Below, piece after piece: positions 4,689 through 38,334 of a stretch of DNA of 41,940 bases; position 1 is the stretch's first letter; the number at the start of each line of letters is the position of its first letter. The position numbers and the translations under genes were made by a program. Source of the DNA: Macrostomum lignano (Eukaryota); assembly GCA_002269645.1 (NCBI GenBank), contig NIVC01004561.1, forward strand, positions 1 through 41,940. Direction: 5' to 3'. Below the pieces are notes generated by a model. That model made no database searches. It was not told the origin of the DNA and saw only the letters and a list, made by a program, of their open reading frames with translations.

Positions 4689-7600
4689 ATGGGCTCTTGC
4701 TGTAGCCGTTGCACTAATGATGACGATGCATCCGCTGTTATTGGCGCAACTAGTGATGGATTTTTAGCTGCGGCTTCATTTCCATCGTCAGTGACACCTG
4801 TAAGTTTCCGGCCGCGCCAACAGCATGACGAAATTATTCAACAGCAAATCTTGCCGCCTGTAAAGCAGGGGGTAGAGAACGCAGCTTTCAGTCGTAGTGA
4901 TGAGGCATCAACAGCACCAGACCTCTGCCAAGCCTCAGCCTCAGCCAAGTCAGTATCGAACGGACCAAAGTGCCACTTTCACTTTCCTGATTGGTTGGGA
5001 ACTATGGCTACCCGAGCTTCGCGTCACCGCCATCTGCACCAGCAAAGTCGGGCACGGGATGGTGGACCTTCTTCAAGCAACAATCGGCGTAAGCTGACTG
5101 GCATTATTGAGCAAGTGAACGAATGCGCACACGTCAGTGATGCATACGAAACCGGTGTAAATGGGACAGAGTTCCTAAACAACTTGCCGGCTAAAATGTC
5201 TTCGTTACAATACTCCGGTGATGACTCTGCTTTCTGTTTACACCGGCAGCTAACGAGGGATCACGGTGCCACTAGTTCGCTTCGTCAGGAACCTGTCAGT
5301 CGAACTATTCCCTCCGAGTCCACGGATCACCAAAACAATCTTGATGGGGAGCAGCACCAAAATGGTAACCACCTTTGTCACAGTCACCACAGCTTCCATG
5401 GCGATGACGTTTACCGAATATTCGTCGAGTCTTCATGGCACGTCAAGTCGTCTATTCTTTCTCTGGTAAATTTTTCACATGTAAAATCTGTGCGAAAACT
5501 GATGACAATTTTATGCGAGATTTAGTCAACCATTAAATTTTTAGTTCGCCGCGAACTTATCTAAAAGTAGCAATGGAAACGGGGCAAAGAAACGGAAGAA
5601 TGAATGGATTCAATTATCGGGTCATTGTGGTGAGCCATGCGATTTGTTCTATGATTTTCCTGTTTTCTTTGACCCATGCACCCAGTTAGAAGAACCGCAA
5701 CTCATTAGCAGCAGCAATTGGCTATTCGAATGTTTAAATTAGTCTAGTTTGTTCGTTCGGAGCTTCTCAAAATGCATTAATCACAAGCGTTAACGGCATA
5801 TTTCAAGTACACAGTCAAACAGTTACTTTTGACAATGGCCGAAATCAGTTCTTTTAACAGTAGAACTACCAAGAGGGGGGGGGGAATTTCCCCCCCCCTG
5901 ACAATTTTTTTCGCTGCGCCGGAACGGAGCAACGCAGGCACACGAAATTTAAGAACACGGGCTAACTTTTTGTTGCGCACCTTCTCAAACAAGAATCAAG
6001 TCGCCAGCCCTCGCCAGACGGCGTCGGGGTGATGGCTGAATGCTTGACTGACTAGCTGAGGATGTCCAGCAGTTGATTTTTGCCCACTATCGAGGCTTGA
6101 TCAGCGAAACTAGAGAAATTCTTATCAGGCTGTCCATAGTCACCTGGTGTAATCTGTTGAAGGAGCCGACGGCGTCGGGATGATGACGGAATGCTTGAGA
6201 GACTAGCTGAAAATGTCTGGCGGTTGATTCTTGCCCACTGTCGAGGCTTGATCGGCGAAACTAGAGAAATCCGCATCAGGGTGTCCATAGTCACCTGGTG
6301 CCACAGCTGTTGAGGGTCCAGAAGCTCCACTTGGGTGAAGGCTAGTGACCAACGAAGTCAGAACTGATGCAGACACATGTGTTCGACGTTCTGATGAAAT
6401 TTGGAGACTTGGCAAGGCGGCACTGAGGCGCAGTGCTAATTGGCGCACAGGGGTGTACTGAATACACTAGCACTTAGCTCGTATGGGAAAAATCCGACCT
6501 TCTGGCAGAATCGTCGAATATCTCGACGGTCCGAAGGGCTGGCGACTTGATTCTTGTTTGAGAAGGTGCGCAACAAAAAGTTAGCCCGTGTTCTTAAATT
6601 TCGTGTGCCTGCGTTGCTCTGTTCCGGCGCAGCGAAAAAAATTGTCAGGGGGGGGAATTTTTCCCCCCCTTTTGGTAGTTCGACGGGCGGAAAAATGGCT
6701 TGGTATTCCTACTGTTAACTTAGCATATGAATATCATCCTGCTTCAGGCACATTTGCGGTGGCAGGCCCATGGAGCATTTGGAAGCGCAGAGACCCACGA
6801 GAAGTAAATGAGCTGCAAGCTTATAAGCTGTTGATGCAAAGCGAACAGCTGAGGCAGTTTGTGCCCATATTCTATCGCGAGGTCGAACACCGGGGAGAGT
6901 GTGAGTTAATCTGAATTATCCACGAATTATCATGCAGTATCCAAAACGAAGTTTAATCTTGCTATGTATTATAGATACTTTAGTATTAGGAACTAATGCT
7001 CAACATTAGTTTGTGTCTGTGGATGTATAGTTTAACCAAGAAGTCAAGATGTTGTTCGATAGGCCACACACAAACTGAGTTTATATGTAAATTTTGGCAC
7101 TGTTCAAAGTCACGCAATGTGATAGTTACGAAGCAAGCAGATATTCCCATTCTACTGACAACTAAGTACACACCACGCCCCCAATGCGCACGCATTTTCG
7201 TACGCCAGTCCCGACAGAGCACTTGATCGAGCCCTGGTTTCTTTAGAGCGAGAGCCGGGGCGCGTTACCACCTGGAGCTGCTCTGCCTCTTTGATGGTCA
7301 AGAAGGAAACTATTCTCATTAAAATAGTTCAAAGATTCGCAAGATCCGATCGACACAAGAAGTAGCCTAATGTCTTTAATCTTCCCTTGTACTAATCAAT
7401 GATTCTTCTAAGCACTTCAGATCAAAGAGGGAGCTAGCAGGTGCGTATAGCCACGCCCAAAAAACAACAGATCACAGATACTTGATCGGATTTATTACAT
7501 CCGTTCTATAGATGAATCTGAATGCAGTGACTGTTTTAACAACGTGTTTTCAGTTGTCCCTGTTGGTGTCTAAAACCTATCATGTTGATTTTTTTAGTTT

Positions 7601-8853
7601 TGGGTTGCGCTTAACTCAACAATGAAGCATCTGCCAGCTATATGAATTGTGTCCTTTCAGATTTCCTTGAACTGGAAGATCTACTTCATCACTTCAAGAA
7701 TCCCAGCATCATGGATGTGAAGATGGGGAGTCGGACTTTCCTGGAGTCCGAGGTGACAAACCCAGTGCTGCGCACGGATTTGTACAAGAAGATGGTCGAG
7801 TTGGATCCCAATGAACCAACTGCAGAAGAGAAGCAGCACCAGGCTGTGACAAAGCTGCGTTACATGCGAGTAAGTCTGTCTGCCAAGGTCAAGTTTGGGC
7901 TGAAATCAGTAATCAAGAGTCTTTATAGCTCTTACGTATTTGTTACTACATGTATAAGCTTAAGAATCCGGAATTGTACGTATCATTTACAATGCATCAA
8001 AATCGAAGTTTATCTATACGTAGTTGATCAGCTTTCGTGCTTCCACACTCTTGCTGGTAGACAATTCGATATTAAAATGCATGTAAAGTATATTTAATTT
8101 TTGTCAGCATTAAAACATTGAAACTTTTCAGTTTCGAGAGAAAGAGAGCACATCAATAACGTTGGGATTTCGCTTAGATGCCATTCGGGTACGTCTCTTA
8201 CTGCCAGTGACACTTATTCAGTGCGAAGAACGCCAGCTAAATCTTAGTACACTTGTACCTTTTTATTTAACAGACAAAAGACCCTAAGACCTGCGAACAG
8301 TACAGTTTACGGCTAAAGACGGCCAAAACAGAAGCTGAGGTAATTAAGCTATTTTGCGCAAACTTCCACTGTCTATGTTACTTTGTGTTGACACCTATCT
8401 GCAGTCGTTTGGTGCCTACATTTTTATACACGCAGGTCGCCGACATCATGCACTACTTCTGCGCATACAATCCGGTCATTATGCGCCAGTACGCTAGACG
8501 GCTCACAGATCTGCGTACTGTGCTGGAAGGCTCCAGCTTCTTCAAGTCTCACGAGGTCCAATGGGTTTCAAAATAGACCATAATTACGGTATACCAACCT
8601 TCAGTTTTATTTCTATCTGTAATTGTCATCTAATTTCCTATTGTAGTTGATTGGGTCGTCACTGCTCTTCCTGCACGATGAGACGCTGAAAGCGAATGCG
8701 TGGATGATCGACTTTGCCAAAACGGTGCCACACCAGGAGCTTCGGCTGAGCCATGCGGTCGAATGGCAGCTGGGCAATCACGAGGATGGCTACCTCACCG
8801 GACTGAATAATCTTATTCGACTGCTGGACGGCATGGCGAATCAGTATGTGTGA
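4689..8853 (+). CDS. IP3K: Inositol-trisphosphate 3-kinase (IPK family; IP3K/ITPK/lfe-2-like), 557 aa
   Basis: join(4689..5465,5545..5629,6748..6900,7661..7869,8132..8188,8274..8339,8436..8555,8647..8853) = 1674 nt, all GT-AG, phases consistent. Motifs: [42 protein letters not shown] (PxxxDxKxG), [49 protein letters not shown]. Confidence 0.95.
5858..6714. mobile_element. Non-autonomous DNA transposon in IP3K intron 2 with ~154-bp TIRs and TTAA (or TA) flanks
   Basis: 5858-6011 matches the reverse complement of 6535-6714, allowing a ~27-bp insertion at 6682-6708. Ends are TTAA|CAGTAG...CTACTG|TTAA. There is an internal 151-bp tandem duplication (6017-6167 and 6168-~6315). Confidence 0.85.
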
Positions 8854-9451: not shown

Positions 9452-12400
9452 CTAAATATGGAGCCTGTAGTCGCGAGTTTCAGGCTCTTGGTTGCGATAG
9501 TCGATCGGCTTCAGGTTGTCCCAGTTGTGGCCCTGGAATTTTATGCAACTTTTATTTAATTTTTCTAAGAATTCATCTCGTATCTTCGTAAAATTAAACG
9601 AACCGTTTCTGAAAGCACGTCTGAAAGGACATAATGTACGTTAACAGCTGTTAGTCTTTGAAACTGCGAGAACAGGCCTCAAAGGAAGTCCTTATATAAG
9701 TCCTTATATGCAGTACCAATGACTTGACCGTTCAGTACTTGTACAATGTATCAGCTCGTAAATTTTTTTTACGCGGTTGTTTACCGAGATTTCCACTCCA
9801 GAGGAGGAGTTGCACGACTGGTGAATACGGCCGGTGCGGTACATTTGCTTCAGGGCGGCCACTTCCATGCGGCCCCATTCTATGCTCTGGTAGTTCTCTT
9901 CGATCGTTTTCTTCCTCGAAGTTTCGGCTCCATAAAGTCTGTCGAATCAAAAATGAATTATGCTTTCTTTTTTGTATAAATTCTAATTCGACCGATGAAT
10001 AATAACACAGACTGATAATGATAACTCACACATTCATTTTTTTGAAGAATCGATCTAAAGTGTTGTCACTGACAATGCTCTTGCACAGTTCAAGCTGACT
10101 CTTCGGGTAGTAAAATACATAGTTCAGGCACATCTCGTTGTTGATCGTCAGGCCGCCGAGAGTGACGTTCCTACGCTTGGACGTGTCGAATGTGCAGGTG
10201 GTCACGAGAGCATCGCCCTTGCAATTGATTATTTTGCTTATTTGCTTAATTTGAACGGTACAATTTGTCATCCTATTGAACTTCAGCCAAAATTCTAGAC
10301 GCATTTATGACTAAAAATTGTATAAAACTTACCGGCAGGACACGAATTGGCTCTGGAAGCAGACGAATTTCCTGGAAATGCGGACTATAATGCTTGTCAT
10401 CGTTAAGAACTCTGACAAAATGACGCGGCCTGTGATGGATTGTCTTCACACGAACCCCTGTCGTATGCGTGTGTAGCTGAGAAGCGAATATCTTGATGCC
10501 GTCCGGTGGAAGCCCCTGTCATTGAAGCCATTCATGAATCATATAAAATATAGCTGCATTATGCAAAAAGACAAAGGGTCTACAAATGTAATATTTCGGC
10601 CTTCATATTTAGTCTTTCAGAACGTACTCTTCCGAGCCTGATTCCACTGCTTCGTGCTTAGCAAATACCTAAAATCTTTAATGTTTTCTCGGCTCAGCGG
10701 TTAACGTGTCTGAATTTCGCATCTTGCACGGGATAATTTAAGGCTCGCGAACAAAGTTTGGCCTGCGGTGAAATTCTCGATGGCTTTCATGAGGCCGATT
10801 CATTCAACCCAGGCAGAGTGTGTACATGCCTGTCGACGAAGAGAAACTCAGGGCCACTCTAAACTCTGTGTGGCGTACTCAGGGGTCGGTGGAATGGGCA
10901 TAACTAAACTACGGAACAGCAAAATACTGCGTAATATTACATTCTATACAAATCGGTAAGCTTGTCGATGAACTCCTACCTCATTTGTGCATTTCGGCAG
11001 GCAAAATCCAGTTAGTTCAAATCTGGGCTCTCCCGGCGGCACTGCGCTGTAGGGCAAATAGTCGAGCCCAAGCTCTATAATTCCGACATCGAATTTCCGC
11101 AGTCTCCGGGTGAGATAGAATCGCAGGCCGCTGCTGTCCACCAGGCCAGATTTACCTGCGGCATTGTTATAGTGCAGTTCTATCACGGCGTACTGAGTTC
11201 CGCTTCGGCCGCTTCGGCCTCCGATGGGCAAGCCAGCCTCGGACGGGTAGAAGATTCCCTGTTCATGGAGTTTGGATGCTTGTACGTCTCACAATGAAGC
11301 CTTGTACAAGGACTACTCAAGTAACATATATATAACTTACTGTGGCGGCCAGACTACGCGACCGGCAGCACCAGTGCAGCCGCACTGGAAACCCCCCCCG
11401 CCTCTGTCTAGCTGAGGTGGGGTGGGTACGCGCCAAGCTAGCCGGCTCGCTAAGCCGGGGGGTTGGCGTAGCCAATCACGCCATGCCACCTTTTCGCACC
11501 TCCCTTGGCCCCTCAATCTCGCACTGTTTGTTATAATCATATAAATACACGCGCAACGCAGTGCAGAATCTTCGCTGCCACTCCATCTATTGAAACTATA
11601 AGGCCTTCCGCCTCATTGGTGAGCCCGACTCCCAGCGCGGAACGCTGGGCCTACCTGGTCGGCCCTGTGCGGTCCTGGCAGCCAACCGCCTTGGCCGACT
11701 GCAACGGCAGCACAGCAGCACCGCAGCACCGCAGCACAGCAGCACCGCAGCACAGCAGCACCGCAGCCCAACCGCACCGCAGCACAGCAGCACCGCAGCC
11801 CAGCAGCACGAATCGGCCCAGTCAGCCCGCCCCCCGGTAGCTCCTGGGGTCTCGCCTTTCGGCCCCCGCGTTGGACCAACCAGCGCCACACGCTGCAGCT
11901 ACTTCTAGGTTAGCACCGCTGCTGCTAGCCTAACGTCCCCAGCCTCTGTGCAAGAGCATCGATCCGGCTCACGGCGGCAACTGACTGTCGATTGCCTCTG
12001 GTGTGGTACGGCCGCGCGCCCCTGCTGCCTTCGGCGCCCACCTGGCGCCCTGCTGCCATCGGCGCCCGCCTGGCGCCCTGCTGCTATCGGCGCCCGCCTG
12101 GCGCCCTGCTGCCATCGGCGCCCGCCTGGCGCCCTGCTGCTATCGGCGCCCGCCTGGCGCCCTGCTGTCTTCGGCGCCCGCCTGGCGTTCTGCTGCCTTC
12201 GGCGCCCGCCTGGCGCCCTGCTGCCTTCGGCGCCCGCCTGGCGCCCTGCTGCCTTCGGCGCCCGCTTCGGCGCCCGCCTGGTGCCCCGCCGCCTTCGGCG
12301 CCCGCCTCGCGCCCCTGCCGCCTTCGGCGCCCGCCTGGCGCCCTGCTGCTACCTTCGGCGCCCGCCTGGCGCCCTGCTGCCTTCGGCGCCCGCCCGGCAC

Positions 12401-14895
12401 CCGCCTGGCGCCCTGCTGCCATCGGCGCCCGCTCGGCGACCTGCTGCCATCGGCGCCCGCTCGGCGACCTGCTGCCATCGGCGCTCTGCTGCCTTCGGCG
12501 CCCGCCTCGCGCCCCCGCCGCCTTCGGCGCCCGCTCCTCGGCGCTCTCGCTGCCTCGGCTACCACCCGACGTTCGGGGCCTAGCTCGGTGCTGGGGGGAG
12601 CTGTGTGGCGGCCAGACTACGCGACCGGCAGCACCAGTGCAGCCGCACTGGAAACCCCCCCCCCGCCTCTGTCTAGCTGAGGTGGGGTGGGTACGCGCCA
12701 AGCTAGCCGGCTCGCTAAGCCGGGGGGTTGGCGTAGCCAATCACGCCATGCCACCTTTTCGCACCTCCCTTGGCCCCTCAATCTCGCACTGTTTGTTATA
12801 ATCATATAAATACACGCGCAACGCAGTGCAGAATCTTCGCTGCCACTCCATCTATTGAAACTATAAGGCCTTCCGCCTCATTACTATATATATATATATA
12901 GTAACTTACAATGTAAGTTGTCCTTGGCCTTATAACTGACATTAAAGTAAAGAGATTCTTTAATGATATAGAATATTATTTATTTGGCTTGGTTTTAGGC
13001 TCTGTACATTTGATTCGCTTCATGTTCTTTACTTTATACTCTTTTAGTAGTAGGCCAGCATTTGTAGTAGGGAAGCCCCCAGTCTCGAAGTGAACAACTT
13101 TTATCCCCGAAGCCGAGGGTGCGCTATACAGTATGTTCAAAAAGCTTTGGCTTTGTGCGATCAGATGATGAGAAAAAAGTTTCTGGCCTCCTTACCGTTG
13201 CACCCATCGCCCAGGCTCCGATGACTTTTCTGCATGAGGTCATGCCGAGAGGCTTTGTCTCAGAGTTGCACGGCGCATCGTAATCCCTGACGGACTCTGG
13301 CAGATCCTCGACGCACAGAAATACCTCCAGGTGATGTACCAGGCCTTCACTTCCCTTGCTGATCACCGGTTCGTACTTTGATTGGCAGTTGCGAAGCAAT
13401 TTTAGATTGCAGAGTCAGCTGTACATGTACATGTAAAGTTACAAAAATCTACGTCAAACAGCAAGCTCTCACCCCGATAATGTGGTGCTGTTCGCGCATT
13501 TCAGGCAGTCGCACCACCCGACACCAGTAGGTAGTTTCCGAAGAAGGCACCTGAACACCTGAGACGCGGACTTCCATCTGCTTCGTGTCCGGTTGGGGTG
13601 GCGGAATCGGCAGCTGGCTTTTGATCAGCTGCACGAGGTGCTCAGACACGTCATAGTCCTGTAGCCGGTCCCACACGAAAGGACTTTTGAAGAACAGCAG
13701 GTGAGTTGTACCGCGCTGTAAAGAATGTTAGAAGCTTAATATTAAAGTCATGGTTGCTAAAGCGAATGCTTTGCGCTAATTTCTATACCAAAAACCCCAT
13801 TGGGACGGCATTGATGACGGAATAATGGCTGCAGATAGTGTGGATTTGACGTGATGCTTTTTCCTTTCAGGTTAAATATCTGTCCAAGCTAGGTAACAAT
13901 AAAATATCCAGCCCTTTTATATCTATCTTGAGGTTAAACTTCTAAATTGTGCATGGTTAGGTTTTATCATAAAAGCTGAACTTTGCACAATACGATAATA
14001 ATAATAACAATTGATTACACCTGCCCTAATGGGCAGATGTGCAACTGACAGCTCAGCCACAGTTATTGCGCCGCACACCTGAAGTCTGTCCAAGGACTGG
14101 GGAGTCCCCACACAAACCCTAAATTACCCGAGCTAATGCTGGCACCCATTTTACAGCTGGGTGGACTGAAGCAATGCAGAGTTGAAGTGTCTTGCTACTA
14201 GCTTGTACTAGCTTACAATACAAAAACCTCTGTTACTAATGGGGTTCTCATCAGAGCAAAAGCTTACATCAATCTTGTAGAAGGTGAGCTCTTTCGGACG
14301 AATTGGTCGCAGAATGGTGAGAACGATAGTTTTCCCATCGGTATCCCAGGCTTTAAGCTCATACTCCGACTTTGGCTGCCGCTTTAGCGTCTTATCCTCG
14401 GTCACACGGAAGTCAGCAATGGTCAGCTTGCGGGTGGATTTAAGAGCGGCTTAGTTGAAAAATAGGCTTTTTGTTGCAAATGTCTCGAGTGCATCCAAAA
14501 CCTATGGGTCTATGGGTACGACGTATCCGTATGGGTGTCTCTACCTAAATACTCGTAGTACTGTTGCACGTTATCGCTGAGTTCAGAAGCATGTATCAAT
14601 ATGGAATTTTCAAGCATTCATGAATCCTCACCAGCTCTGAAGCGTCAATGTACACGATCCCAAAGTCGGCGCCTTCAACCTTGCCGCGGTCTGAGAAGCC
14701 CAGTCCAACGACGGTGGTGCCCTGTGGCACTTCTACATTAAAAACTATGAAATTTGCGCGCCAATTGAAATTCCAACTAAGTTGACAGCCGCCGCCCAAA
14801 GGTAGCTTATAGGGTAGCTTCTCTACCTGGCTTGGCGTGGAAGCATCTGCAGCTAAAGTCAGGCCAAAAATCAAAAGCAATGCTGTAGGCAGCAT
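9452..14895 (-). CDS. tbh: Tyramine beta-hydroxylase / dopamine beta-hydroxylase-like copper type II ascorbate-dependent monooxygenase, 576 aa
   Basis: complement(join(9452..9532,9785..9938,10030..10217,10333..10515,10980..11258,13196..13375,13473..13715,14268..14426,14632..14895)) = 1731 nt, all GT-AG. Signal peptide MLPTALLLIFGLTLAADA, DOMON domain (LSWNF...GLGFSDRG), ETTYWC, CuH ligands VHHLEVF and ELHYNN, AWAMGA, CuM ligands SQLHTH and NEMCLNY, and HYSPHFQEIR (DBH/TBH type rather than MOXD1 type). An extra upstream exon cannot be excluded because a 3' splice site lies 8 nt before the ATG. Confidence 0.93.
11708..11811. repeat. 8-bp tandem repeat CAGCAC(A/C)G, ~13 copies, inside the LTR element
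   Basis: Direct reading: cagcacag cagcaccg cagcaccg cagcacag... Confidence 0.9.
12021..12545. repeat. GC-rich 28-bp minisatellite CTGCTGC(C/T)(T/A)TCGGCGCCCGCCTGGCGCC, ~18 degenerate copies, inside the LTR element
   Basis: Unit read directly. The 28-aa periodicity of the overlapping ORFs equals three 28-bp units. Confidence 0.9.
13995..14197 (-). mobile_element. 5'-truncated SINE with (ATT)n tail in tbh intron 2
   Basis: The reverse complement reads gcaagacacttcaactctgcattgcttcagtccacccagctgtaaaatgggtgccagcattagct...ggcaggtgtaatca-(att)n and aligns with 15839-16123. Confidence 0.8.
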
Positions 14896-16889: not shown

Positions 16890-17370
16890 GGGCGGGCGGC
16901 ATTGCTGCCTCGCTGCAAAGAATTCATCTACCAAGTGCCAAGCATCACGGACGACATGCATGGCACGGCGCAGGGCGCTTGCCTGGGGGCATTCCGTACC
17001 GTGCGGACTGTCCCCGCGCTGCCGGATCGTCTGAGAGGGCGGCTGTTCCAGGCCGTCATAGAAACCGGCAACTCGCTCATGCTGGACTTCTGTGAGCCGC
17101 ATTCGGTGACCACTACTCGCCGACCGCCACCACCAACACCAGCAATGACGAGCCATCCCGACGGCCCAGCTAATCCCGACCTAGCCAGCTGCTACGCATC
17201 CGGCGCCTACAGCTGGCCGCCACGTCATCCGAGCAGAGTAGTACTGCCCTGAGTCGCTGCAGGACGTGCTGCTACTCTCCCTTCAAGAGCCTCGACTTCT
17301 CGCGGCTTGGTCAGGCGAGAAGTCTGCGTTTCGTCGACCTGCTTCTAAGAGACGATGAGATATCTGACTC
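16890..17370 (+). mobile_element. RTE-like non-LTR retrotransposon 3' fragment (post-RT region), decayed
   Basis: Frameshifted translation LPRCKEFIY...ARRRALAWGAFRTVRTV-PALPDRLRGRLFQAVIET...SQLLRIRRLQLA-HVIRAE*YCPESLQDVLLL matches RTE-type C-terminal motifs (FxYLG, RxxxAWxAF, RRLxxAGHxxR). Confidence 0.8.
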
Positions 17371-18789: not shown

Positions 18790-20103
18790 TTAATTCTGTT
18801 GAATGTTTGGCTGCCTTAACAACCTCAGCACAATTTTTCACTTTCTTCTTGGCGATTGGACATCATTCAATAATAAAAACTTTATAGCTCGTATCTCCCT
18901 CTAGTTATGGAGACAAAAAGTTATACTTTACAAATTGGTTCTGGACCAGAACAAGCAATATGAAAAGGCACGAAGTACTACCACTTTTGTTTAAATTTAT
19001 CGCGATTTTTAAAACTAGCGCCGAATTATAAAAATCGTAAAGTAAAAATCGTAATGTAAAAAAAATTAAATGTAAATGTCAGGAATGACTATAAAATATA
19101 ACTACCTTTTAGTGATGAAAATGCCTTATCATCTAATTAGTTATTGTATTAGTGGTACACATTAATTTACTGACAAGATTCAATTTATCTCAAGCTTATA
19201 ATATTATATTTATCTATCTAAATTGAATTGAAATTAGAATTGAGCTTAATTCTTATATATCTAATCTAACTAATTCCAATTACTAATACTAGAACTAATA
19301 TTATGTTTGTGCAATTTGATAACTTTACTGTATATAGTGCATATTGCATTTGCATTTTGAAAAAAAACAAAGTAATGATTATACTTAAACAATGATTACC
19401 TATCTAAAAGTTTCTGCAACTTTAAGTTGAATGCCTCAAAGGTCCTAAAGTTAAGTAACTTTCTTTACTTAAAAACACTTATAAAGTATGTTACTACAAA
19501 AACAAACAATTGTAAAAACAAACAATAGGCCTATGACATTAAATTTTGTGTTCTCATTTGTGTTCTCACTTTGTTTTTTTGATTTTTTTATATTTGGAAG
19601 CATATTTGGAAATTGGAAAATGAAATTTCTGAATACAAAACATTCTGATTTCTATAAAAATGAGACTTTTTTTCAATTCGGATTCCAAATTTGAATATTT
19701 AGATCCATTGCTATTGATAGCACATGTGACCTAGAAGGCCATATAGCAGAGCCATAGCACTTTGACTAGGGGGCCTAGAACTTTGTTGGGGCCAAACGCC
19801 TTGCCACCTGATGTTTTTTGAGTGAATAGCCCAATGTCTATTGTGGTGACTGAGCTTGTATAGAAGTCTTTAATCCTCAGCTAGGAGGGGCATATCCAGT
19901 GAGAATGCAAAACTAGCAAGCAACAACAATGCAGATGAGCTTATAATGCCAACAAAAAAGTTGCACAATTCATTCTTGCATTCCTCTAGGGTGTCAATGG
20001 CTAGGTTTAGTGCCACATGCTTTTTGTGCCCTATCAGAGTCTAGATAGCTATTTACATTGCTGGGCTAGGCTGGCTAGCTGCAGTGATAGACCTAATGGC
20101 ATT

Positions 20104-20380
20104 CCTGATTGCAGCGCATGGGCATTTTGGCGGACGGCGTCCGGCGCGGATCTAATACGGCGCGGCGCGGCGCATACGCGTGCGGCGATTAGTACGGCGC
20201 GGCGCAGTACTAATTAGATGCCGAGGCATTTAGGCTTGATAAGACAGTCATAGTTACTCCTGCCGTTTACCCAAAACTGCGTTAACTTTGCTTTAGGTTT
20301 CTTTCACAGGTAAGTCATTTCACAGCGTGGCGCAGGTTGTGTAGGCGTCTGGCGTACTTAAGCCATGCGCTGCAATAGGG
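20104..20380. mobile_element. 277-bp MITE with 18-bp TIRs and 8-bp TSD (hAT- or P-type)
   Basis: TIR CCTGATTGCAGCGCATGG versus reverse complement CCCTATTGCAGCGCATGG (16/18). Perfect TSD ATGGCATT at 20096-20103 and 20381-20388. Confidence 0.85.
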
Positions 20381-20520
20381 ATGGCATTGTTGATAGTAGC
20401 CTACTGCCGCTTATCTAGAAGATGCTCAAATGTTTCTTCAGTGTAGCCTATGGGCTGCTAGTTTCTATGGAGCTGCTTGATATAGAGCCATACTTGCTTG
20501 ATAGTTAGGTTGCTCTAATA

Positions 20521-21695: not shown

Positions 21696-22253
21696 CTCTA
21701 ATAGACAGGCAGCAATTTTTATACTAGCCATATCAATGGGACCATTTGCTCTGTAGTGGCTCTAATGGCAGTGCTAATATTAGAATACTCCGCCTTGTAT
21801 TAATCTCTATAATAGATCTCCTGATCTCTATAATAGCCATAATAGAAACCTACAGCAAGATGAGGTCCAGTTCTAGGCTGTGGGCTAGCTAGACAAAGAT
21901 GGTGCAATACTAGGGGGCCTTCAAAGTTTGATAGTTCATTGTGCCAAGTCTGAGGTGGCCATCTGGTACAGCTAGGGCCAGATGGAGGTTGGCCTCATGG
22001 TCCCTAGCACCACCCAGCAGATCTATAGTTGAAGTTGTAAGGACTAAAAATGATAGGCACCTGGCTGCGCCACAGAGCCACCCTTGCCAGTTGCACTCAG
22101 TACAACATTGTGTGCTGTGCCAACCTTTGTAAGTGCCTGCTATGCTGAACTTTGCTGCTGTAGCCAAGGCGCAGCTGTCTGAGCCAATTGAGGTTGTCTG
22201 CAGCTTGATGATCTGGCCATAATACCAGGTGTCTGTACTATTTGCATGGGTAT

Positions 22254-22614
22254 GCAAATATAATGGCTTGGCAAATGTAATGGCTCTGCAAAAATTATGG
22301 CCTTGCAAATATAATGACTCTGCAAATATCATGGCTCTACAAATATAATGGCTCTGCAAATATAATAGCTCTACAAATATAATGGCTCTACAAATATAAT
22401 GGCTCTGCAAATATAATGGCTCTACAAATATAATGGCTCTGCAAATATAATAGCTCTACAAATATAATGGCTCTACAAATATAATGGCTCTGCAAATATA
22501 ATAGCTCTACAAATATAATGGCTCTACAAATATAATGTCTGCAAAAATAATGGCCTTGCAAATATAATGACTGCAAATATAATGACCCTGCAAATATAAT
22601 GGCTCTGCAAATAT
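22254..22614. repeat. 17-bp tandem repeat GCAAATATAATGGCTCT / ACAAATATAATGGCTCT, ~21 copies
   Basis: Direct reading. It explains the repetitive ORFs 22140-22325 and 22388-22711 and the repetitive N-terminal part of ORF 21910-22410. Confidence 0.92.
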
Positions 22615-22932: not shown

Positions 22933-25881
22933 ATGGGACCTATTTCAAGACAGTCAGTAAGCAGCCGATCCAGTACTAGCAGCATTGTCAAAGGCCGCGC
23001 AGCCAGTGTCAGACAGCAGGCTCTGCAAAATCGAATGCGCCAGAGGCCTTTCGCTGAGAAGCTTGACGCCGTTAGCGCAGCGGCGGCCGCAGCTGCTGCT
23101 ACAGCCGCTGGCTATGGGCGCCAAGGTTCCCCGCTTGTCTTCGATGTAGCCCTAGAGTCGCGGAAGCGCCTGGCCACGCCGCGCGTTGTTGTCGCCGCCA
23201 CTGAGGCAGCCGGGCGTAGAAAGCAGCAGCCGCCAACGCCGTCGTCTTCAACTCTGGCCGAGCCGCTGACTGCGCGCAAGTCCAGCGACCTCAAGCGCAT
23301 CCGCAATCCGGAGCTGCGCGCCCTGGCGCTGGTCAATTCGCCAATGATCGATTCTCGGCGACAGCAGCAGCGGCGCTCCACCCTGTCTGGCCGGTCGCCT
23401 GCACCGGCGCCTCAGCAGCGGCAAATCGAATCGGCTGCTGCTGCCGGGGCCGACTTGGCCGAAGTGAAGGCGGCTATTGAGACCGGGGACGAATGCGAAC
23501 GGGTGACTCGGGCCTACCTAATGATGCTGCACCAGCAGTGGGAGTACTTTAGGTGAGTACGCTTTTCTCTATGCTTCAAGAAGTTTCCGGACTGTGTTCA
23601 CTGTGGACAGCAGGATTTTTTAAATAAGTTAAACTTTTACCTGAGAAAGCTGTACCCAAGAAATGTACCCATTTTGAAGTTTGCAGTTTTTTATGCAGGT
23701 AAAACGGCATATTGGTGTCAAAAAGCGTCCTCGGTATGTCTTGAAACGGCATTTAAATTAGCTAATAAGGGAATAAATTATTGAACCACCATAGAGTCCA
23801 TAGATAAAAACCATAGACCCTCTGCAAACTTCAAAATCGTGTTAGAAATTTCTTGGGTACAGTTTTGAAATGCTCATAACTTTTGGCGGGCACGTGGTAT
23901 CGCTGTGAAATTTATGCTTTAATAAAACAGACGTGAAAAAGAATATCAAGAAGGTATGAAAGTAAGGTTGGAGGCTGTTGCTAAATTAAATGCAAAAAGT
24001 TGTGTTTATAGTAATAAACTTCTTGCAATGCTTTTCAGACAGCTGATTGGCGATTGGCGCGAAGTTCTTTCAACGGAAGCTGCCTCAATACCGGAAGCTG
24101 GTCAAGGCAGCATTCGCACCGCCATTGGTATGGCGGAACTGCTCTGCAAAAAGAAGTTTCCATTCTTTGAAGGCATGCTAAAAAAGTGCGTTAACGCTCC
24201 ACCGAACGATGCAGAGAATACGGAGCCAGACGCTACGCTGCCAATCCTTCCTGGCGATGTGACTGGCTACTGGACTTTGGTTGAGCGGGAAATTGACAAC
24301 GTCAAGGCTGAATTTGCCAGCCTGGAGGCCGATCGCAGCGCCGGATGGCCAGCCAAAGCACCTGTGAAGCCGGCTCCGGCAAAGACTGCGCCGCGTAAGC
24401 AGCCACGACAGCCACCTCGGACAAAGACTGCTGGGGCAGCCAAGGCAAAGTCGCGATTTGCCGAATTCCGCAAAAAACACCTGCTGACAATGTCTACTAC
24501 AGGCGTTGGTGCTATCTCATCACCGATGGTTAGTTTTGCTACGACTTCAAGGTCAGGCTCCGTCTCCGCACGCAAGTCCTTCGCGGCTAAGACACCCGGA
24601 ACCAGAACACCTTCCCAGAGAGTTTCTTCGGCACGAACTCCTGCAACAAAGACACTTGTGCAAAATTTTCACGGTCGTTGCACTCCTGAAATTAAAAATT
24701 CGGAAAGAAGGACGTCTAGAAGAGTGACAGCTGGAGCGAAGACTCCTGGCAAAGAGTCGGGAGGAACGAAGACTCCAGGCAAGGAGTCAGGAGGAGCGAA
24801 GACTCCAGGCAAGGAGTCAGGAGGAGCGAAGACTCCAGGCAAGGAGTCAGGAGGAGCGAAGACTCCAGGCAAGGAGTCAGGAGGAGCGAAGACTCCAGGC
24901 AAGGAGTCAGGAGGAGCGAAGACTCCAGGCAAGGAGTCAGGAGGAGCGAAGACTCCAGGCAAGGAGTCAGGAGGAGCGAAGACTCCAGGCAAGGAGTCAG
25001 GAGGAGCGAAGACTTCAGGCAAGGAGTCAGGAGGAGCGAAGACTCCAGGCAAGGAGTCAGGAGGAGCGAAGACTCCAGGCAAGGAGTCAGGAGGAGCGAA
25101 GACTCCAGGCAAGGAGTCAGGAGGAGCGAAGACTCCAGGCAAGGAGTCAGGAGGAGCGAAGACTCCAGGCAAGGAGTCAGGAGGAGCGAAGACTCCAGGC
25201 AAGGAGTCAGGAGGAGCGAAGACTCCAGGCAAGGAGTCAGGAGGAGCGAAGACTTCAGGCAAGGAGTCAGGAGGAGCGAAGACTCCAGGCAAGGAGTCAG
25301 GAGGAGCGAAGACTCCAGGCAAAGAGTCAGCGGGAGCGAAGACTCCAGGCAAGGAGTCAGGAGGAGCGAAGACTCCAGGCAAGGAGTCAGGAGGAGCGAA
25401 GACTCCAGGCAAGGAGTCAGGAGGAGCGAAGACTCCAGGCAAAGAGTCAGCGGGAGCGAAGACTCCAGGCAAGGAGTCAGGAGGAGCGAAGACTTCAGGC
25501 AAGGAGTCAGGAGGAGCGAAGACTCCAGGCAAGGAGTCAGGAGGAGCAAAGACTCCAGTCGAAGTCTCAGACTCGCAGTCCTCAGTAAAGGCTAGAATTG
25601 AGACATTTGAAGCGAGGATTTCCGCCACAAAGCGGGCCACCTCATCAGCCAAAGACGCGCCTGAGAAGTCGCCAGCTACCGCAGCTAAAAGGCGGCGCTC
25701 AACTAGCAAGTCGGTGTCCTTTAACGCCGTCTGTTTGCAATCTGCCGACGCCAGCCTCGGGGATCGAGTTGACCGGCAGCTGACGCCGTATCCGACCCGG
25801 CAGTCCGCCCGCCGGCGCCAGGCTAACTTGGGCTCTGATCAGCCCCTGGTTGCTACCATGGAAGCGCTGGAAGATGATTAA
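22933..25881 (+). CDS. DLGAP5: GKAP/SAPAP-domain protein, DLGAP5/HURP/Mars-like mitotic microtubule-associated protein, 820 aa, with a C-terminal GAKTPGKESG repeat array
   Basis: join(22933..23552,24039..25881) = 2463 nt, phase-2 GT-AG intron. The GKAP domain spans the junction: EYFRQLIGDW...SIRTAIGMAELLCKKKFPFFEGML...GDVTGYWTLVEREIDNVKAEFASLEADRSAGW. The basic, TP/SP-rich disordered flanks and the lack of a C-terminal QTRL PDZ ligand favour DLGAP5 over synaptic SAPAPs (inference). Confidence 0.82.
23650..23862. mobile_element. MITE-like remnant in the DLGAP5-like intron
   Basis: CTGTACCCAAGAAAT...ATTTTGAAGTTTGCAG (23650-23686) is mirrored by CTGCAAACTTCAAAAT...ATTTCTTGGGTACAG (23822-23862). 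No clear TSD. Confidence 0.65.
24733..25557 (+). repeat. Coding 30-bp minisatellite, 28 units encoding GAKTPGKESG
   Basis: Unit GGAGCGAAGACTCCAGGCAAGGAGTCAGGA. Three units read KTSGK, two have ESA and the last reads KTPV. Confidence 0.97.
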
Positions 25882-26226
25882 GTTGCTGAGTTATAAAAGT
25901 GGAGGCCAATCGCTGCTAATTATAATAAACATTAAGGTCTTTTGACCCTTATTAATTAGGTAATAGCAAGTTTATTATGTATTGCGTAGCGTCATGTGTC
26001 ACAGTTGTACTTTAATTTTCATCCAAGACGAAACGCGGTTAGTGCGCGAATGATGAAGCAAAAGGAAGCAAAGCATAAGTTTGAACGTATTCTATATATT
26101 AGCAGGTATGCTAAAATCTTTAGAGTTCTACACCTGCTTTTCCTTAGATGAATTCCAGTTTCATTTTCTATGCTACGTCCAAACATTCAAAATTCGCATT
26201 TGACGATTTTGGAACAATTCATACAT

Positions 26227-27285: not shown

Positions 27286-28430
27286 ATGGATGTCACAAAC
27301 CTAGGCAAGCCGTTGCTGGGGACCGCAGCCGCTATCTCAGCTGGTACTGAAGGCGACAGTCATCTCAGCATCGCTGCCAAGGCCCTCACTACTTTGAGCT
27401 TGTTGCTCATCTTTCTGCCAATAACTTTGTATTTCTTTGCTAAGTCGCTTGTGTTTGAAGGTGAGTTGTGTCATTGTCATTGTCAAATATATCAGTCAGA
27501 CTAGTGTCAGATCTATCAATGTCAGATTGTCAGATCTATCAATGTCAGAGTGTCAGATCTATCAATGTCAGACTAGTGTCAGATCTATCAATGTCAGAGA
27601 GTGTCAGATCTATCAATGTCAGAGAGTGTCAGATCTATCAATGTCAGAGAGTGTCAGATCTATCAATGTCAGAGTGTCAGATCTATCAATGTCAGACTAG
27701 TGTCAGATCTATCAATGTCAGAGTGTCAGATCTATCAATTTCAGAGAGTGTCAGATCTATCTATGTCAGAGAGTGTCAGATCTATCAATGTCAGAGAGTG
27801 TCAGATCTATCAATGTCAGAGAGTGTCAGATCTATCAATGTCAGACTAGTGTCAGATCTATCAATGTCAGAGAGTGTCAGATCTATCAATGTCAGAGAGT
27901 GTCAGATCTATCAATGTCAGAGAGTGTCAGATCTATCAATGTCAGAGAGTGTCAGATCTATCAATGTCAGACTAGTGTCAGATCTATCAATGTCAGACTA
28001 GTGTCAGATCTATCAATGTCAGAGAGTGTCAGATCTATCAATGTCAGATTGTCAGATCTATCAATGTCAGAGTGTCAGATCTATCAATGTCAGACTAGTG
28101 TCAGATCTATCAATGTCAGAGAGTGTCAGATCTATCAATGTCAGAGAGTGTCAGATCTATCAATGTCAGAGAGTGTCAGATCTATCAGTGTCAGAGAGTG
28201 TCAGATCTATCAATGTCAGAGAGTGTCAGATCTATTAATGTCAGTGTCAGAATAGCATAAAGAATGGCAATGGTTGCATCCCAGGCCTGTTCCTGCTGTC
28301 ATCGCGGCAGAGCTATATTTACTCGGCCATCCTGGCGGTGGTCACTGTCCATGTACTGCTGGCAGGCTTCCTGCTGTTCGCATTCTACGAAGGCGGCCGG
28401 ACTGTTTACGTGTCCTACAAGAGGGACTAA
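27286..28430 (+). CDS. VMA21: Vacuolar ATPase assembly integral membrane protein VMA21, 106 aa
   Basis: join(27286..27460,28285..28430) = 321 nt; donor GAAG|GTGAGT, acceptor CCCAG|GC, phase 1. Protein MDVTNL...ALTTLSLLLIFLPITLYFFAKSLVFEG|LFLLSSRQSYIYSAILAVVTVHVLLAGFLLFAFYEGGRTVYVSYKRD has two TM helices, resembles recalled human VMA21 (VPIGLYFTTKSYIFEG...YAAIVAVVAVHVVLALF) and ends in a dibasic C-terminus. Confidence 0.93.
27483..28250. repeat. Modular satellite filling the VMA21 intron: GTCAGATCTATCAAT plus a variable module (GTCAGAGAGT / GTCAGACTAGT / GTCAGAGT / GTCAGATT), ~30 units of 23-26 bp
   Basis: Direct reading. It explains the repetitive ORFs 27437-28255. Confidence 0.95.
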
Positions 28431-30918
28431 AAAAACTATAAAACTATGCTTTATATTCAGAATTTAAAGCAAGCGTTTTTCAACTTCATGCAGCTGTTTT
28501 GTTATAGCAGTGAATTATGCCGTTAAACCGTCCTTTGCTGCTTTATTGCGGCTGTTTTACTTTTTTGTTTCTTTTTTAATTCGGTTTTCTTGCTGAATAT
28601 TTTTTAAGTTAATAATTGACTACCCTGGTCGTTAGTAAAATAGTTTTTGTCTGGATTGCTAGCCTGGTAAGGAAGTTATTTTAGTTCAGTTTATTAAACA
28701 CTTACTCCGTATGCAAGCGTTTGAGATCGATTTTCAGTGAGCATTCTACAAAAGCGATTGCCGAACAAATAAAAGTGCATCGCGTGTAGTGTAGTGTGGC
28801 CTTTTGCATAATTGGAAATGCGACATTGGCCTTAATTCACTCACCGTACGTGACTGGCACTTCAAATCAAAGCTTCTATTCTCTTTATTGCTTTCAGTTC
28901 ACGTGAGTGAGCGCGCGCGGTTTTGCCTCTTATCTTTTTAGCATCCTAACAAAGCCTAGCTAGCATAAATCTGAGCTGAGCGGGACAGCCGTAAGGGCAT
29001 GCAATCTTGATGAGTGCCTTTTTCAAGCACAAACTGTTCAGGGAAAGGGGATTTTTTGGGTGACATCTCCTGTCTTCTTTGAAGTGGATTTTCGTCTTAT
29101 GAGCCGCACACCTTTTAAGTCCTCTTTCGTGCATTCATTGCGTCTCAAAAGCAAGAAATTATTTGGCTTTACTAGTGCTCGCGAATTAAAGGCTTGTGGG
29201 CTTGTTCACACAGTCATCAATCGGGTCATAGAGGCACATAACTGGTTTGCAAGACACAATCTGTTCAACTCACTTGACCTTATAGTATTATAGAGCTACT
29301 AAGCCTAAAGTTTTGTTGAGTACAGTTTGCTATCTTTTCCGTTGTTTTTTTTGACAAAACACGTGTAGGTTTCTGCGAAAACTGATACTTCTGACGCTTC
29401 GAACATCCTGGATAACGGGGACGGCAGTAATATTGTTGGTAAAATTTTTAGCACGATGGACGACCGCTTTGAATATATAGTAAAGCGCTTAATTCCTTTT
29501 AATCACTATTGATGTAGCTAGTGGCACTACTTACAGTAGACTCAGTAAGGTTTCTATCGGTTTAAGCTACTTGTTCACAGTGCAATTGTTCCTAAGTAGC
29601 GATCGCTCATTGGCTCAAGCCACCCTTAGAGAGATGCGGTTCCTCCTGTGATTGAAGCTGGCTACACATTAGCCATAGCTTAAACAGGCATGCAGTCCTC
29701 TGGCTATTGGCCCGCAATTCAGCCGGGACAGCTGTAACTGGCTCAGCTGTCTGGACTGGCAGAGTTCTTCCAAACCCTTCTTAAAAACCGAACTGATTCT
29801 GTCTTAGCCAGGAGACCGTCTACTGAAGGTGCGATTTATGGTCAGCGGCGGCTTTTGACGTTTTGATGCGTTTTCCTGATTCCCTTGTCAATCGGCTTGA
29901 AAAGCAATCCGTGTATAAGGCGGAGAGAGGCGCGCGTAAAGGAGGAGCATGCGACAATTGCTGCGCTGCTGACTAACGCAAGAACTCGCTGATTGCTAAG
30001 GAAAGATACCTGGCCATTCTGGAGCTTTCTTTTCGAGGCTCGCATTGTAAGTTTTCAGCCTGTGCTATAATAAATTTTTATTAAAGTAGTTTATTCCAAA
30101 TGCGGCACTAATGTCAATAAAAATCTATGAATTTTTGTGTAACTGCTTAAAGAACTGCCGAAGTAATTTATTCAGAATGTAATTTACTTTATTTTGTGGG
30201 ACCCGTGAATCAATTTCTGTCTATTCTTGAGAAGCTAATTATGCATGATTCTGATCGTTTTTTACACAAAAGCTGATGCTCTTCAACTGCCATTAAAATC
30301 AAAGCCAACGGGACAATGATCGAAAAATAGTGGAGAATGAGCTAGTTAGGAAGCCAGCGAGGCGGAACGGGTAGAGACAGGACAGACAGAATGCGCGAGT
30401 TCAGAGCGGAGGTCCTCAACTGGCCGCTGCATCCTGCTAAATCCCTGGGGAGAATTCCCGATGGACTCCCGCCCCAGGGTTACTCAGTGAGTTCGTGATG
30501 TTTCAAAATCCCAGCTGTGGATCCGCTGTGAGAAGTGTAATTTTTGCTGCTGAGCTGGCGGATTCCTGTCGGCTGGCGCCAGCCTGTTGCGTAATCGCCA
30601 GCAACTGGGTTGATCTGCCCAAGTGGCGTCTATAGCTATCGCGATTTGCATCGCAATTGCTCTTTCATCTTTCACTTGCAGAGAGAGAAGTATCACGTTT
30701 GCTTTCCCAGTGGCACCCATTCGAAATGTTGATCATCATTTTTTGAGATGGGAGCGCTGATGCGTGCATGCTGATCACTGGTGCTGGGCATGGATTCTGA
30801 CTATGCAAAGCAGTGTGATTGCGCTGGAAATTTCTTCTTAATTTCCATTAAGAAAAGCTTATTTCTTACTTGTACTTTTACCAATGTTTTTAGTGGCATC
30901 AACCAAAGTGCATAGACT

Positions 30919-34739: not shown

Positions 34740-36192
34740 ACGGGCGCTGATCGAGGGGGTGCTGTCCTTAGGGACGGGTCGCTGTCCCTCAGGGGCACTG
34801 TTATTCAGGGACGCCGTCCTTAGAGAGCGGGCGCTGTCTTTAGGGAAGGGGCACTGTCCTTAGGGAAGGGGCACTGTCCTTAGGGAAGGAGCACTGTCCT
34901 TAGGGAAGGGGCACTGTCCTTAGGGAAGGGCACTGTCCTTAGGGAAGGGGCACTGTCCTTAGGGAAGGGGCACTGTCCTTAGGGAAGGGGCACTGTCCTT
35001 AGGGAAGGGGCACTGTCCTTAGGGAAGGGGCACTGTCCTTAGGGAAGGGGCACTGTCCTTAGGGAAGGGGCACTGTCCTTAGGGAAGGGGCACTGTCCTT
35101 AGGGAAGGAGCACTGTCCTTAGGGAAGGAGCACTGTCCTTAGGGAAGGGGCACTGTCCTTAGGGAAGGGGCACTGTCCTTAGGGAAGGAGCACTGTCCTT
35201 AGGGAAGGAGCACTGTCCTTAGGGAAGGGGCACTGTCCTTAGGGGGGAGGCACTGTCCTTAGGGAAGGGGCACTGTCCTTAGGGAAGGAGCACTGTCCTT
35301 AGGGAAGGGGCACTGTCCTTAGGGAAGGGGCACTGTCCTTAGGGGGGAGGCACTGTCCTTAGGGAAGGGGCACTGTCCTTAGGGAAGGAGCACTGTCCTT
35401 AGGGAAGGGGCACTGTCCTTAGGGAAGGGGCACTGTCCTTAGGGAAGGAGCACTGTCCTTAGGGAAGGGGCACTGTCCTTAGGGGGGAGGCACTGTCCTT
35501 AGGGAAGGGGCACTGTCCTTAGGGGGGAGGCACTGTCCTTAGGGAAGGGGCACTATCTATAGGGGGGGAGGCACTGTCCTTAGGGAAGGGGCACTGTCCT
35601 TAGGGAAGGGGTACTGTCCTTAGGGAAGGGGTACTGTCCTTAGGGAAGGGGCACTATCTATAGGGGGGGAGACACTGTCCTTAGGGAAGGGGCACTGTCC
35701 TTAGGGAAGGGGCACTGTCCTTAGGGAAGGAGCACTGTCCTTAGGGAAGGGGCACTGTCCTTAGGGGGGAGGCACTGTCCTTAGGGAAGGGGCACTGTCC
35801 TTAGGGAAGGAGCACTGTCCTTAGGGAATGGGCACTGTCCTTAGGGAAGGAGCACTGTCCTTAGGGAAGGAGCACTGTCCTTAGGGAAGGGGCACTATCT
35901 ATAGGGGGGAGGCACTGTCCTTAGGGAAGGGCACTGTCCTTAGGGAAGGGGTACTGTCCTTAGGGAAGGGGTACTGTCCTTAGGGAAGGGGCACTATCTA
36001 TAGGGGGGGAGACACTGTCCTTAGGGAAGGGGCACTGTCCTTAGGGAAGGGGCACTGTCCTTAGGGAAGGGGTACTGTCCTTAGGGAAGGGGCACTATCT
36101 ATAGGGGGGAGGCACTGTCCTTAGGGAAGGGGCACTGTCCTTGGGGAAGGGGCACTGTCCTTAGGGAAGGGGTGCTGTCCTCGTGGGGGGGG
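34740..36192. repeat. 20-bp G-rich satellite CACTGTCCTTAGGGAAGGGG, ~65-70 copies
   Basis: Regular core ~34845-36170 with degenerate edges. Variants include GGAAGGAG, GGGGGAGG and CTATCTATAGG. Confidence 0.97.
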
Positions 36193-38078: not shown

Positions 38079-38334
38079 AGCCATGAAATTCACCATGGCA
38101 GTTAAGAAAGTCATGGAATTCACAATGGCAGCTCAAAAAGCCATGGAATTCACAATGGCAGCTCAAAAAGCCATGGAATTCACAATGGCAGCTCAAAAAG
38201 CCATGGAATTCACAATGGCAGTTCACAAAGCCATGGACTTCACAATGGCAGCTCACAAAGCCATGGAATTCACATGGCAGTTCACAAAGCCATGGACTTC
38301 ACAATGGCAGTTCACAAAGCCATAGAATTCACAG
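38079..38334. repeat. 30-bp minisatellite GCAGCTCAAAAAGCCATGGAATTCACAATG, ~8 copies
   Basis: Direct reading. It explains ORFs 38050-38256 and 38059-38325. Confidence 0.92.

Follow-up and report, generated by a model that had tools for sequence, protein, structure and literature searches.

A young and length-unstable coding minisatellite of CDK-consensus decapeptides in a GKAP-domain protein of the flatworm Macrostomum lignano

Introduction

HURP (DLGAP5) of vertebrates and Mars of Drosophila are the closest described counterparts of the protein treated here, which is encoded on a stretch of 41,940 nucleotides from the flatworm Macrostomum lignano (assembly GCA_002269645.1, contig NIVC01004561.1, positions 1 to 41,940 of the forward strand; in the following called the window) and combines a GKAP domain with a 30-bp tandem array that reads as a long row of GAKTPGKESG decapeptides. 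HURP is a substrate of Cdk1–cyclin B (Hsu et al. 2004, as cited in PMC2063914) and of Aurora A (PMC4659922). The three-helix bundle of human HURP binds the longitudinal face of β-tubulin, and the exchanges R468A/E480A/Q484A and M512A/Q516A abolish this binding (PMC11471760). For C. elegans DLGR-1 and Drosophila Mars it has been described that the GKAP domain is the only part shared with HURP and that there is no homology at the N-terminus (PMC11364988).

A first reading of the window from its sequence alone, called the original prediction below, had described a HURP/DLGAP5-like protein with a tail of tandem full sites for cyclin-dependent kinases (CDK) and had proposed that this tail could act as an ultrasensitive mitotic charge switch. 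Our analysis points to a more modest interpretation, to which we give a probability of roughly 55%, namely that the array is a young and unstable in-frame minisatellite forming a tolerated, phosphorylation-tunable appendage of bulk charge on a HURP/Mars-like GKAP protein.

Results and Discussion

Using Tandem Repeats Finder we detected a single array at 24733–25558 (period 30, 27.5 copies, 96% matches, 0 indels, score 1554), which in the frame of the gene reads as 27 full decapeptide units and a half unit (24733–25557, plus strand; 275 aa, aa 439–713). The units comprise 20 copies of GAKTPGKESG, one of GTKTPGKESG, three of GAKTSGKESG and two of GAKTPGKESA; the first unit also encodes GAKTPGKESG with 3 synonymous DNA changes, and the terminal unit, GAKTPVEVSD, is degenerate, with 22 of its 30 bases equal to the consensus compared to a background maximum of 19/30 elsewhere in the window. 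This lysine-rich [GAKTPGKESG]n segment carries 24 T-P-G-K sites and a net charge of +28 and is predicted to be disordered. Direct splitting into units gave exactly the 24 copies of K-T-P-G-K originally counted, and the 28 units stated at the time were a slight round-up. Two further elements of the original prediction were also borne out: the array stands in frame downstream of the GKAP domain, in the terminal exon, and the frame stays open through it into a unique C-terminus of 107 aa with the stop at 25879–25881. All six frames of the unit are free of stop codons, and the open frame through the array is therefore not itself proof of coding.

The units in the interior of the array are identical in DNA and those at its edges are more diverged. 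Units 10, 18 and 26 share a P-to-S variant, which thus has a spacing of 8 units, and units 20 and 24 share a G-to-A variant; this pattern indicates block duplications. There is a second copy of the locus (L001, contig NIVC01004189.1), which runs collinear to the window for more than 20 kb with about 98–99% identity and contains an array of the same unit, in frame to the same stop. The copy number is 27.5 units for the window versus 13.5 for this near-identical copy, and gene models of the earlier ML2 assembly have 13 and about 16–18 units; all these numbers are counts from assemblies and gene models, and the absolute copy number needs reads for its verification. From the identity of the interior DNA, the recurring variants and the different lengths in near-identical copies and other models we conclude that the array is a recent and length-unstable coding minisatellite. 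Tandem arrays account for 12% of the window, with nine arrays of at least 200 bp, and simple and tandem repeats for 15% of the M. lignano genome, in which 180 Mb are duplicated at 95% identity or more (PMC5730564). Because the genome is so rich in repeats, it is no rare kind of event here that a disordered coding region contains a minisatellite whose unit length is a multiple of 3.

The surroundings of the gene differ between the two copies as well. A 17-bp minisatellite (TGCAAATATAATGGCTC) about 320 bp 5' of the start codon has 21.5 copies in the window (22253–22614) and 19.5 in L001 (9353–9682), so the promoter-proximal region varies in length too. Further upstream, about 2.5 kb of L001 (2119–4630) have no counterpart at about 17240–17245 of the window, an insertion/deletion difference that possibly goes back to a mobile element, and at 20103–20381 the window has about 280 bp extra compared to L001.

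Between the window and L001 only 4 of 1638 bases of the non-array coding sequence differ, compared to 27 of 1791 in the intron and the flanks (Fisher p = 8e-5), and the 324 nt following the array, stop included, show no difference between the two genomic copies. As the linked tail is thus unchanged (0/324 versus 27/1791 in non-coding sequence) and as the transcript-derived GenBank coding sequence (CDS) uses the same frame and stop, we take the frame of the array to be coding. The GenBank protein annotated on this contig (P0001, BOX15_Mlig022919g1) shares start, splice junction, frame and stop with our model of 820 aa, and has 590 aa with about 4.5 repeat units. The GenBank product of L001 (P0002) likewise has 590 aa and about 4.5 units, despite the 13.5 units in the genome. 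To obtain P0002 from L001 a segment of 270 bp bounded by AG..GC or GA..CA has to be removed (gap region 11789–12059), and to obtain P0001 from the window at least two separate gaps within the array are needed (gap region 24721–25510), none of them a canonical intron. A real intron in place of the annotated gap was rejected for three reasons: the junctions are non-canonical, two or more gaps have to be assumed for the window, and the annotated product has the same length at both loci although one array has 27.5 units and the other 13.5. Transcripts that splice the array out, which the original prediction had named as evidence that would speak against it, are therefore not what the annotation indicates, and the gaps look artefactual.

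The annotation of the assembly was derived from a short-read de novo transcriptome mapped by BLAT and merged with StringTie models (PMC5730564). Given the non-canonical gaps in the array, both 590-aa models probably follow a collapsed transcript assembly which was forced onto the longer genomic arrays. With such a collapse, the simplest reading of the annotation is that the locus is transcribed and that its mRNA spans the domain, the repeat units and the tail, and the annotation then says nothing about the true number of units. The deposited proteins would probably be too short by roughly 230 aa (window) and 90 aa (L001). It could also be that the long array lies outside the expressed protein, either because transcripts carry about 4–5 units, from a shorter allele or after removal of repeats, or because the long-read assembly inflated the copy number. 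The 590-aa models with their approximately 4.5 units agree with this idea, as does the finding that seemingly the same haplotype has 27.5 units in one assembly and about 16–18 in the other (P0003), and the ML2 models P0003 and P0005 contain frameshift errors inside the array. However, the two loci share one annotated 590-aa product although their arrays have 27.5 and 13.5 units, the gap in L001 is bounded by non-canonical AG..GC or GA..CA, and the window requires two or more gaps. One would also expect perfect 30-bp repeats to collapse in a short-read transcriptome mapped by BLAT (PMC5730564), and two contigs of this assembly as well as the independent ML2 models show 13 or more units. We consider an array outside the protein to be very doubtful.

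In our model the gene (all features on the plus strand) has two exons with a spliced CDS of 2463 nt, encoding 820 aa and the stop. An ORF at 22933–23556 is continued by the long ORF at 23956–25881 that holds the array, and a canonical donor and acceptor join both in phase. Exon 1 (22933–23552, GenBank BOX15_Mlig022919g1) begins with the ATG at 22933 and ends at the donor AG|GTGAGT (23552/23553); it encodes aa 1–206 plus 2 nt, covering the disordered basic N-terminus and the start of the GKAP domain, and its translation is the N-terminus of P0001. The sole canonical intron (23553–24038, 486 nt, phase 2, GTGAGT...TTTTCAG) is followed by the acceptor TTTTCAG|A with the exon start at 24039, and splicing gives the sequence ...WEYF-R-QLIGDWREV, with the same junction in P0001–P0004. 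The terminal exon (24039–25881), defined by the ORF and the splice model, comprises the remainder of the GKAP domain, a basic linker, the array, the unique tail and the stop. The linker (24454–24732, aa 346–438, net charge +15) begins with a conserved KSRFAEF helix and has five minimal S/T-P sites, including those in AAKTPGTRTP, with RRTS/RRVT immediately before the array. The unique C-terminal tail (25558–25878, aa 714–820, 107 aa, net charge +4) contains KRRRSTS, a motif of the basophilic-kinase type, and ends with EALEDD, hence without a PDZ ligand. An AATAAA polyadenylation signal is located at 25924–25929, 43 nt past the stop codon.

The Pfam GKAP domain PF03359 covers aa 148–345 of the spliced protein (23374–24453, split by the intron) with 43.1 bits against a cut-off of 27 (E 5e-11), and exon 2 alone reaches 35.4 bits, so that the search proposed with the original prediction confirmed membership in the GKAP family. 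AlphaFold2, run with a 50-sequence alignment, predicted helices at aa 186–219, 226–258 and 278–307 which form a three-helix bundle with pLDDT >90 (aa 186–307, 23488–24339). Everything after aa 360 has pLDDT <50, the array and the tail included, and both are accordingly predicted to be disordered. Just past the bundle a further helix is predicted over KSRFAEFRKKHLL (aa 344–357, 24448–24489) with the motif KS(K/R)FAEF, which is conserved among the trematode orthologues and also occurs in several unnamed long-tail relatives. A Foldseek search against the PDB gave only two significant folds (E ≤0.001), the top one being HURP(428–534) bound to α/β-tubulin (8x9p_C, E 1e-4, target-normalised TM 0.84) and the second the GH1 domain of GKAP (4r0y_A, E 9e-4, rmsd 2.2). 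In the HMMER alignment the HURP contact residues R468, E480, Q484, M512 and Q516 correspond to R, K, F, L and E, and as only R468 is identical, tubulin binding is not to be assumed. No homology to the N-terminal microtubule-binding domain of HURP was found, since only the GKAP region aligns significantly with 8x9p_C and the upstream stretch scores −2.1 bits, a partial comparison as 8x9p_C may omit the extreme N-terminus of HURP. The N-terminus of the flatworm protein (aa 1–147) has a net charge of +17 and is predicted to be disordered.

The assignment within the GKAP family is less clear than the domain itself. The named best matches, with names that were assigned automatically, are "guanylate kinase-associated protein mars" and "disks large-associated protein 5" from trematodes, a cestode, insects and lamprey, and "DLGAP4/Vulcan" proteins are also among the relatives. 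In line with the phylogeny called for by the original prediction, a neighbour-joining tree of 76 domain sequences was computed; it is star-like, and the window protein falls inside none of the named clades. Two profiles were also derived from the relatives, the first from proteins whose domain is followed by a long tail (HURP/Mars-like), the second from those with a short tail (SAPAP-like). The window protein scores 120.6 bits with the long-tail and 111.3 bits with the short-tail profile, a gap of 9 bits, compared to the approximately 25–78 bits by which 15 of 16 sequences preferred the profile of their own group in leave-one-out runs and the 20–27 bits by which trematode orthologues favour the long-tail profile. 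A sequence search of the PDB did not separate DLGAP5 (E 1.7e-4) from DLGAP1 (E 2.5e-4).

The architecture is more informative. SAPAP proteins are defined by a C-terminal PDZ motif of the -QTRL type and have N-terminal guanylate-kinase-binding repeats of the R-x-x-S-Y type. The flatworm protein has its GKAP domain in the centre, followed by 470 aa (195 aa without the array); a SAPAP-type PDZ-ligand C-terminus is absent, the protein ending with EALEDD 470 aa past the domain, and no R-x-x-S-Y repeats occur, as there is not a single SY dipeptide in the whole 820 aa. Because of the central domain, the long basic tail, the C-terminus without PDZ ligand and the missing R-x-x-S-Y repeats the protein appears HURP/Mars-like rather than SAPAP-like, an assignment which is weak, favoured by the architecture and only weakly by the sequence. 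Of the HURP/DLGAP5 identity originally proposed, the GKAP domain is thus supported, together with a three-helix bundle and an architecture that fit it, whereas the star-like tree, the 9-bit gap between the profiles and the single identical residue among five contacts leave the specific assignment weak. One might instead regard the protein as a diverged DLGAP/SAPAP-like scaffold, or one with a flatworm-specific role, and not as a HURP/Mars spindle protein, with its TP repeats serving MAPK, CDK5-like or DYRK kinases or being a mere spacer. The tree without a named clade for the window protein, the small difference between 120.6 and 111.3 bits and the equal PDB sequence matches to DLGAP5 and DLGAP1 are in line with this, and invertebrate GKAP proteins have just this domain in common with HURP (PMC11364988). 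Against it stand the names mars or DLGAP5 of the best named matches, the central position of the domain, the long basic tail behind it and a C-terminus that is no PDZ ligand, the 20–27 bits of the trematode orthologues towards the long-tail profile and the tubulin-binding domain of HURP as top structural match, and we therefore hold such a role for rather improbable.

An exhaustive HMMER search gave 280 relatives; 153 sequences have the domain, 147 of which lie outside the copies of this gene. A comparable tandem peptide array was found in none of these 147 GKAP-domain relatives, two of which show a faint periodicity only, nor is there one in the proteins of trematode or cestode origin that bear the name mars or DLGAP5. 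An older paralogue from M. lignano (Mlig020599) stops just after the domain and is also without array. Judged from these sequences the array is not a conserved feature of the GKAP family, and the original statement that no HURP orthologue with such an array was known holds within these data. Word-indexed protein searches with the GKAP region alone or the array alone gave no match, not even to the entries of the gene itself, and are no evidence of absence. The paralogue Mlig020599 is located at 6013–7505 of L002 (contig NIVC01001551.1), is about 42% identical in the domain and has a 26-bp × 11 minisatellite in its intron (6835–7121). Another kind of repetition was observed in Macrobrachium nipponense XP_064108094 and a relative (P0006 and P0007), which have 3–4 tandem copies of the entire GKAP domain plus linker.

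All 24 full S/T-P-x-K/R sites of the protein are located in the array and none elsewhere; outside the array there are 12 minimal S/T-P sites, and R-R-x-S/T motifs flank it. T-P-G-K fits the S/T-P-x-K/R consensus, as had been proposed, and the charge reversal proposed with it is arithmetically right: the array, with +28 next to an N-terminus of +17 and a linker of +15, would change to about −22 with all 25 TP sites phosphorylated. In the C-terminal tails of the long-tail relatives (n = 36) we counted 95 full CDK sites versus 20 expected from composition-preserving shuffles, none of 500 of which reached 95. Full CDK sites are enriched in the short-tail (SAPAP-like) relatives as well, there in the N-terminal regions, and we rejected the enrichment as a marker of the HURP type. 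Since both groups are enriched, it appears to be a family-wide trait of the disordered parts.

Following the original prediction one could regard the array as a selected multisite CDK1 module, in which phosphorylation acts as an ultrasensitive mitotic charge switch for microtubule or chromatin binding, or for condensation, of a HURP orthologue. Such a switch would fit the 24 perfect T-P-G-K sites with their possible flip from +28 to about −22, the confinement of the full CDK sites of the protein to the array, the strong enrichment of these sites in the disordered regions of the relatives, the position of the array downstream of a HURP-type tubulin-binding fold and a basic linker, the basophilic-kinase-type motifs RRTS and KRRRSTS on its two flanks and the regulation of HURP by Cdk1 and Aurora A. 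It agrees poorly with the twofold gap in copy number (27.5 versus 13.5) between near-identical copies, with the occurrence of site-destroying P-to-S units at three positions through duplication, with the lack of conservation of the array outside this gene, with an identity of the units in DNA that speaks for a very recent expansion and not for long-term selection, and with the general abundance of minisatellites (12% of the window and 15% of the genome, PMC5730564). We consider a selected switch unlikely. Even further reaching would be the idea of a new lineage-specific and multivalent CDK1/PP2A-B55 "timer", with the array as all of the CDK input to a HURP-like tubulin-binding protein in the stem and germ cells of the flatworm and a copy number that grades spindle binding or mitotic timing heritably between copies and individuals, which we regard as highly improbable.

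For the tolerated minisatellite that we prefer, the following course can be suggested. Unequal exchange or replication slippage may have amplified one decapeptide bearing a proline-directed site, next to a linker that already has AKTPG and other TP sites. The expansion would have been tolerated because the region is disordered, and it would have added a charge of about +28 and 24 full-consensus CDK sites to a basic and probably microtubule- or tubulin-binding protein. Should dividing cells contain this protein, as is the case for its relatives, many of the TP sites would be phosphorylated by CDK1, and the phosphorylated array (about −22) would be attracted less to acidic tubulin or chromatin. 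Thr-Pro sites with flanking lysines are good substrates of PP2A-B55, and since the sites of the array are of this type, PP2A-B55 could reverse their phosphorylation fast at mitotic exit. The presence of the array may matter, while its exact length does not seem to be tuned, because near-identical copies differ twofold and units that have lost the site were able to spread. An untuned number weakens the ultrasensitive version of the switch and leaves room for a function of the array as such.

Several observations weigh against this interpretation. The repeat unit and the upstream AAKTPG segment share only 15 of 30 bases, which is below the background maximum of 19/30, and a derivation of the unit from AAKTPGTRTP is thus unsupported at the DNA level. 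The absence of any full CDK site beyond the array would also fit a selected CDK module and is nearer to the stronger claim of the original prediction, and the sole transcript-derived model holds about 4.5 units. Among the five tubulin contacts of HURP that were mutated, four differ in the flatworm protein, with E480 to K and Q484 to F being non-conservative and M512 to L and Q516 to E conservative or semi-conservative, and the assignment to the HURP type is weak, as seen from the star-like tree and the 9-bit profile gap. Literature and supplements, searched by locus tag and for an M. lignano DLGAP5, yielded nothing on expression, localisation or phosphorylation.

Other repeats and genes were also observed in the window. 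The adjacent gene at 27286–28470 is VMA21-like (PF09446 was found on the equivalent gene of L001), its first exon starts with MDVTNLGKPLL..., and a 25-bp × 31 minisatellite at 27481–28244 apparently lies within its intron. The largest repeat of the window is a 20-bp × 68 array (GTCCTTAGGGAAGGGGCACT) at 34816–36181 with 58% GC and a strong GC skew, which is also present in L001. Another array with a 30-bp unit (AGCCATGGAATTCACAATGGCAGCTCACAA) has 8.5 copies at 38079–38333. At 11707–12559 a block of about 68% GC is built from 8/16-bp and 28/56/84-bp repeats, and although several frames are open on both strands, it is probably a non-coding satellite. At 7642–8097 an ORF fragment matches the first part of the inositol polyphosphate kinase domain PF03770 with 37 bits and is probably one exon of an IPK gene.

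Conclusion

In summary, the array is new within the GKAP/HURP family, while coding minisatellites that give a multisite phospho-region are a known kind of feature. If it is merely tolerated, it represents an ordinary coding minisatellite in a genome with 15% tandem repeats. If it is translated in full length and phosphorylated, M. lignano would offer a natural series of about 13, 18 and 27 units for studying how the response of a microtubule-associated protein depends on the number of CDK sites, a question that could be tested since the animal is amenable to transgenesis, and a regulatory cluster of phosphosites would have been born in one step from a minisatellite. Other repeat-bearing genes of this genome are likely to share the problem of too short gene models.

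Compared with known systems, the flatworm protein resembles HURP/DLGAP5 and Mars in its centrally placed GKAP/GH1 three-helix bundle (TM 0.84 to HURP(428–534)), its long basic and disordered flanks and the kinase motifs of its C-terminal part, both proline-directed and basophilic. Unlike HURP it has no detectable homology to the N-terminal microtubule-binding domain and only R468 of the five contacts is identical, and unlike the HURP/Mars relatives, with about 1 full CDK site per 100 aa in their tails, its array has 8.7 per 100 aa. The C-terminal repeat region of Spt5 (PF12815), where TP is phosphorylated by CDK9, is similar in having short tandem repeats with a Thr-Pro CDK site each in a disordered tail. 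PF12815 indeed matches the array with 45.9 bits, and with 11.7 bits when only two units are kept. Homology to Spt5 was rejected, as Pfam detects neither an NGN nor a KOW domain and most of the score is lost on trimming to two units, and for the same reasons we ascribe the match to the composition of the repeat.

Besides the Spt5 repeats, the nearest analogues in function are the KSP repeats of neurofilament-H (NF-H), which are polymorphic in number, the TPxKK sites of nucleolin and the S/TPxK sites of histone H1. They are proline-directed sites flanked by lysines in disordered tails, and their phosphorylation alters charge and binding. The repeats of neurofilament-H, nucleolin and histone H1 are older and degenerate in DNA and belong to proteins unrelated to the flatworm protein, whose units, in contrast, are near-identical in DNA and vary twofold in number between near-identical gene copies. 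As in coding minisatellites in general, the unit is divisible by 3, the interior near-identical, the edges diverged, and block duplications of higher order as well as differences in copy number occur. In contrast to typical coding minisatellites, the encoded peptide is a full kinase consensus, and it is found in a family of regulators that was already enriched in CDK sites.

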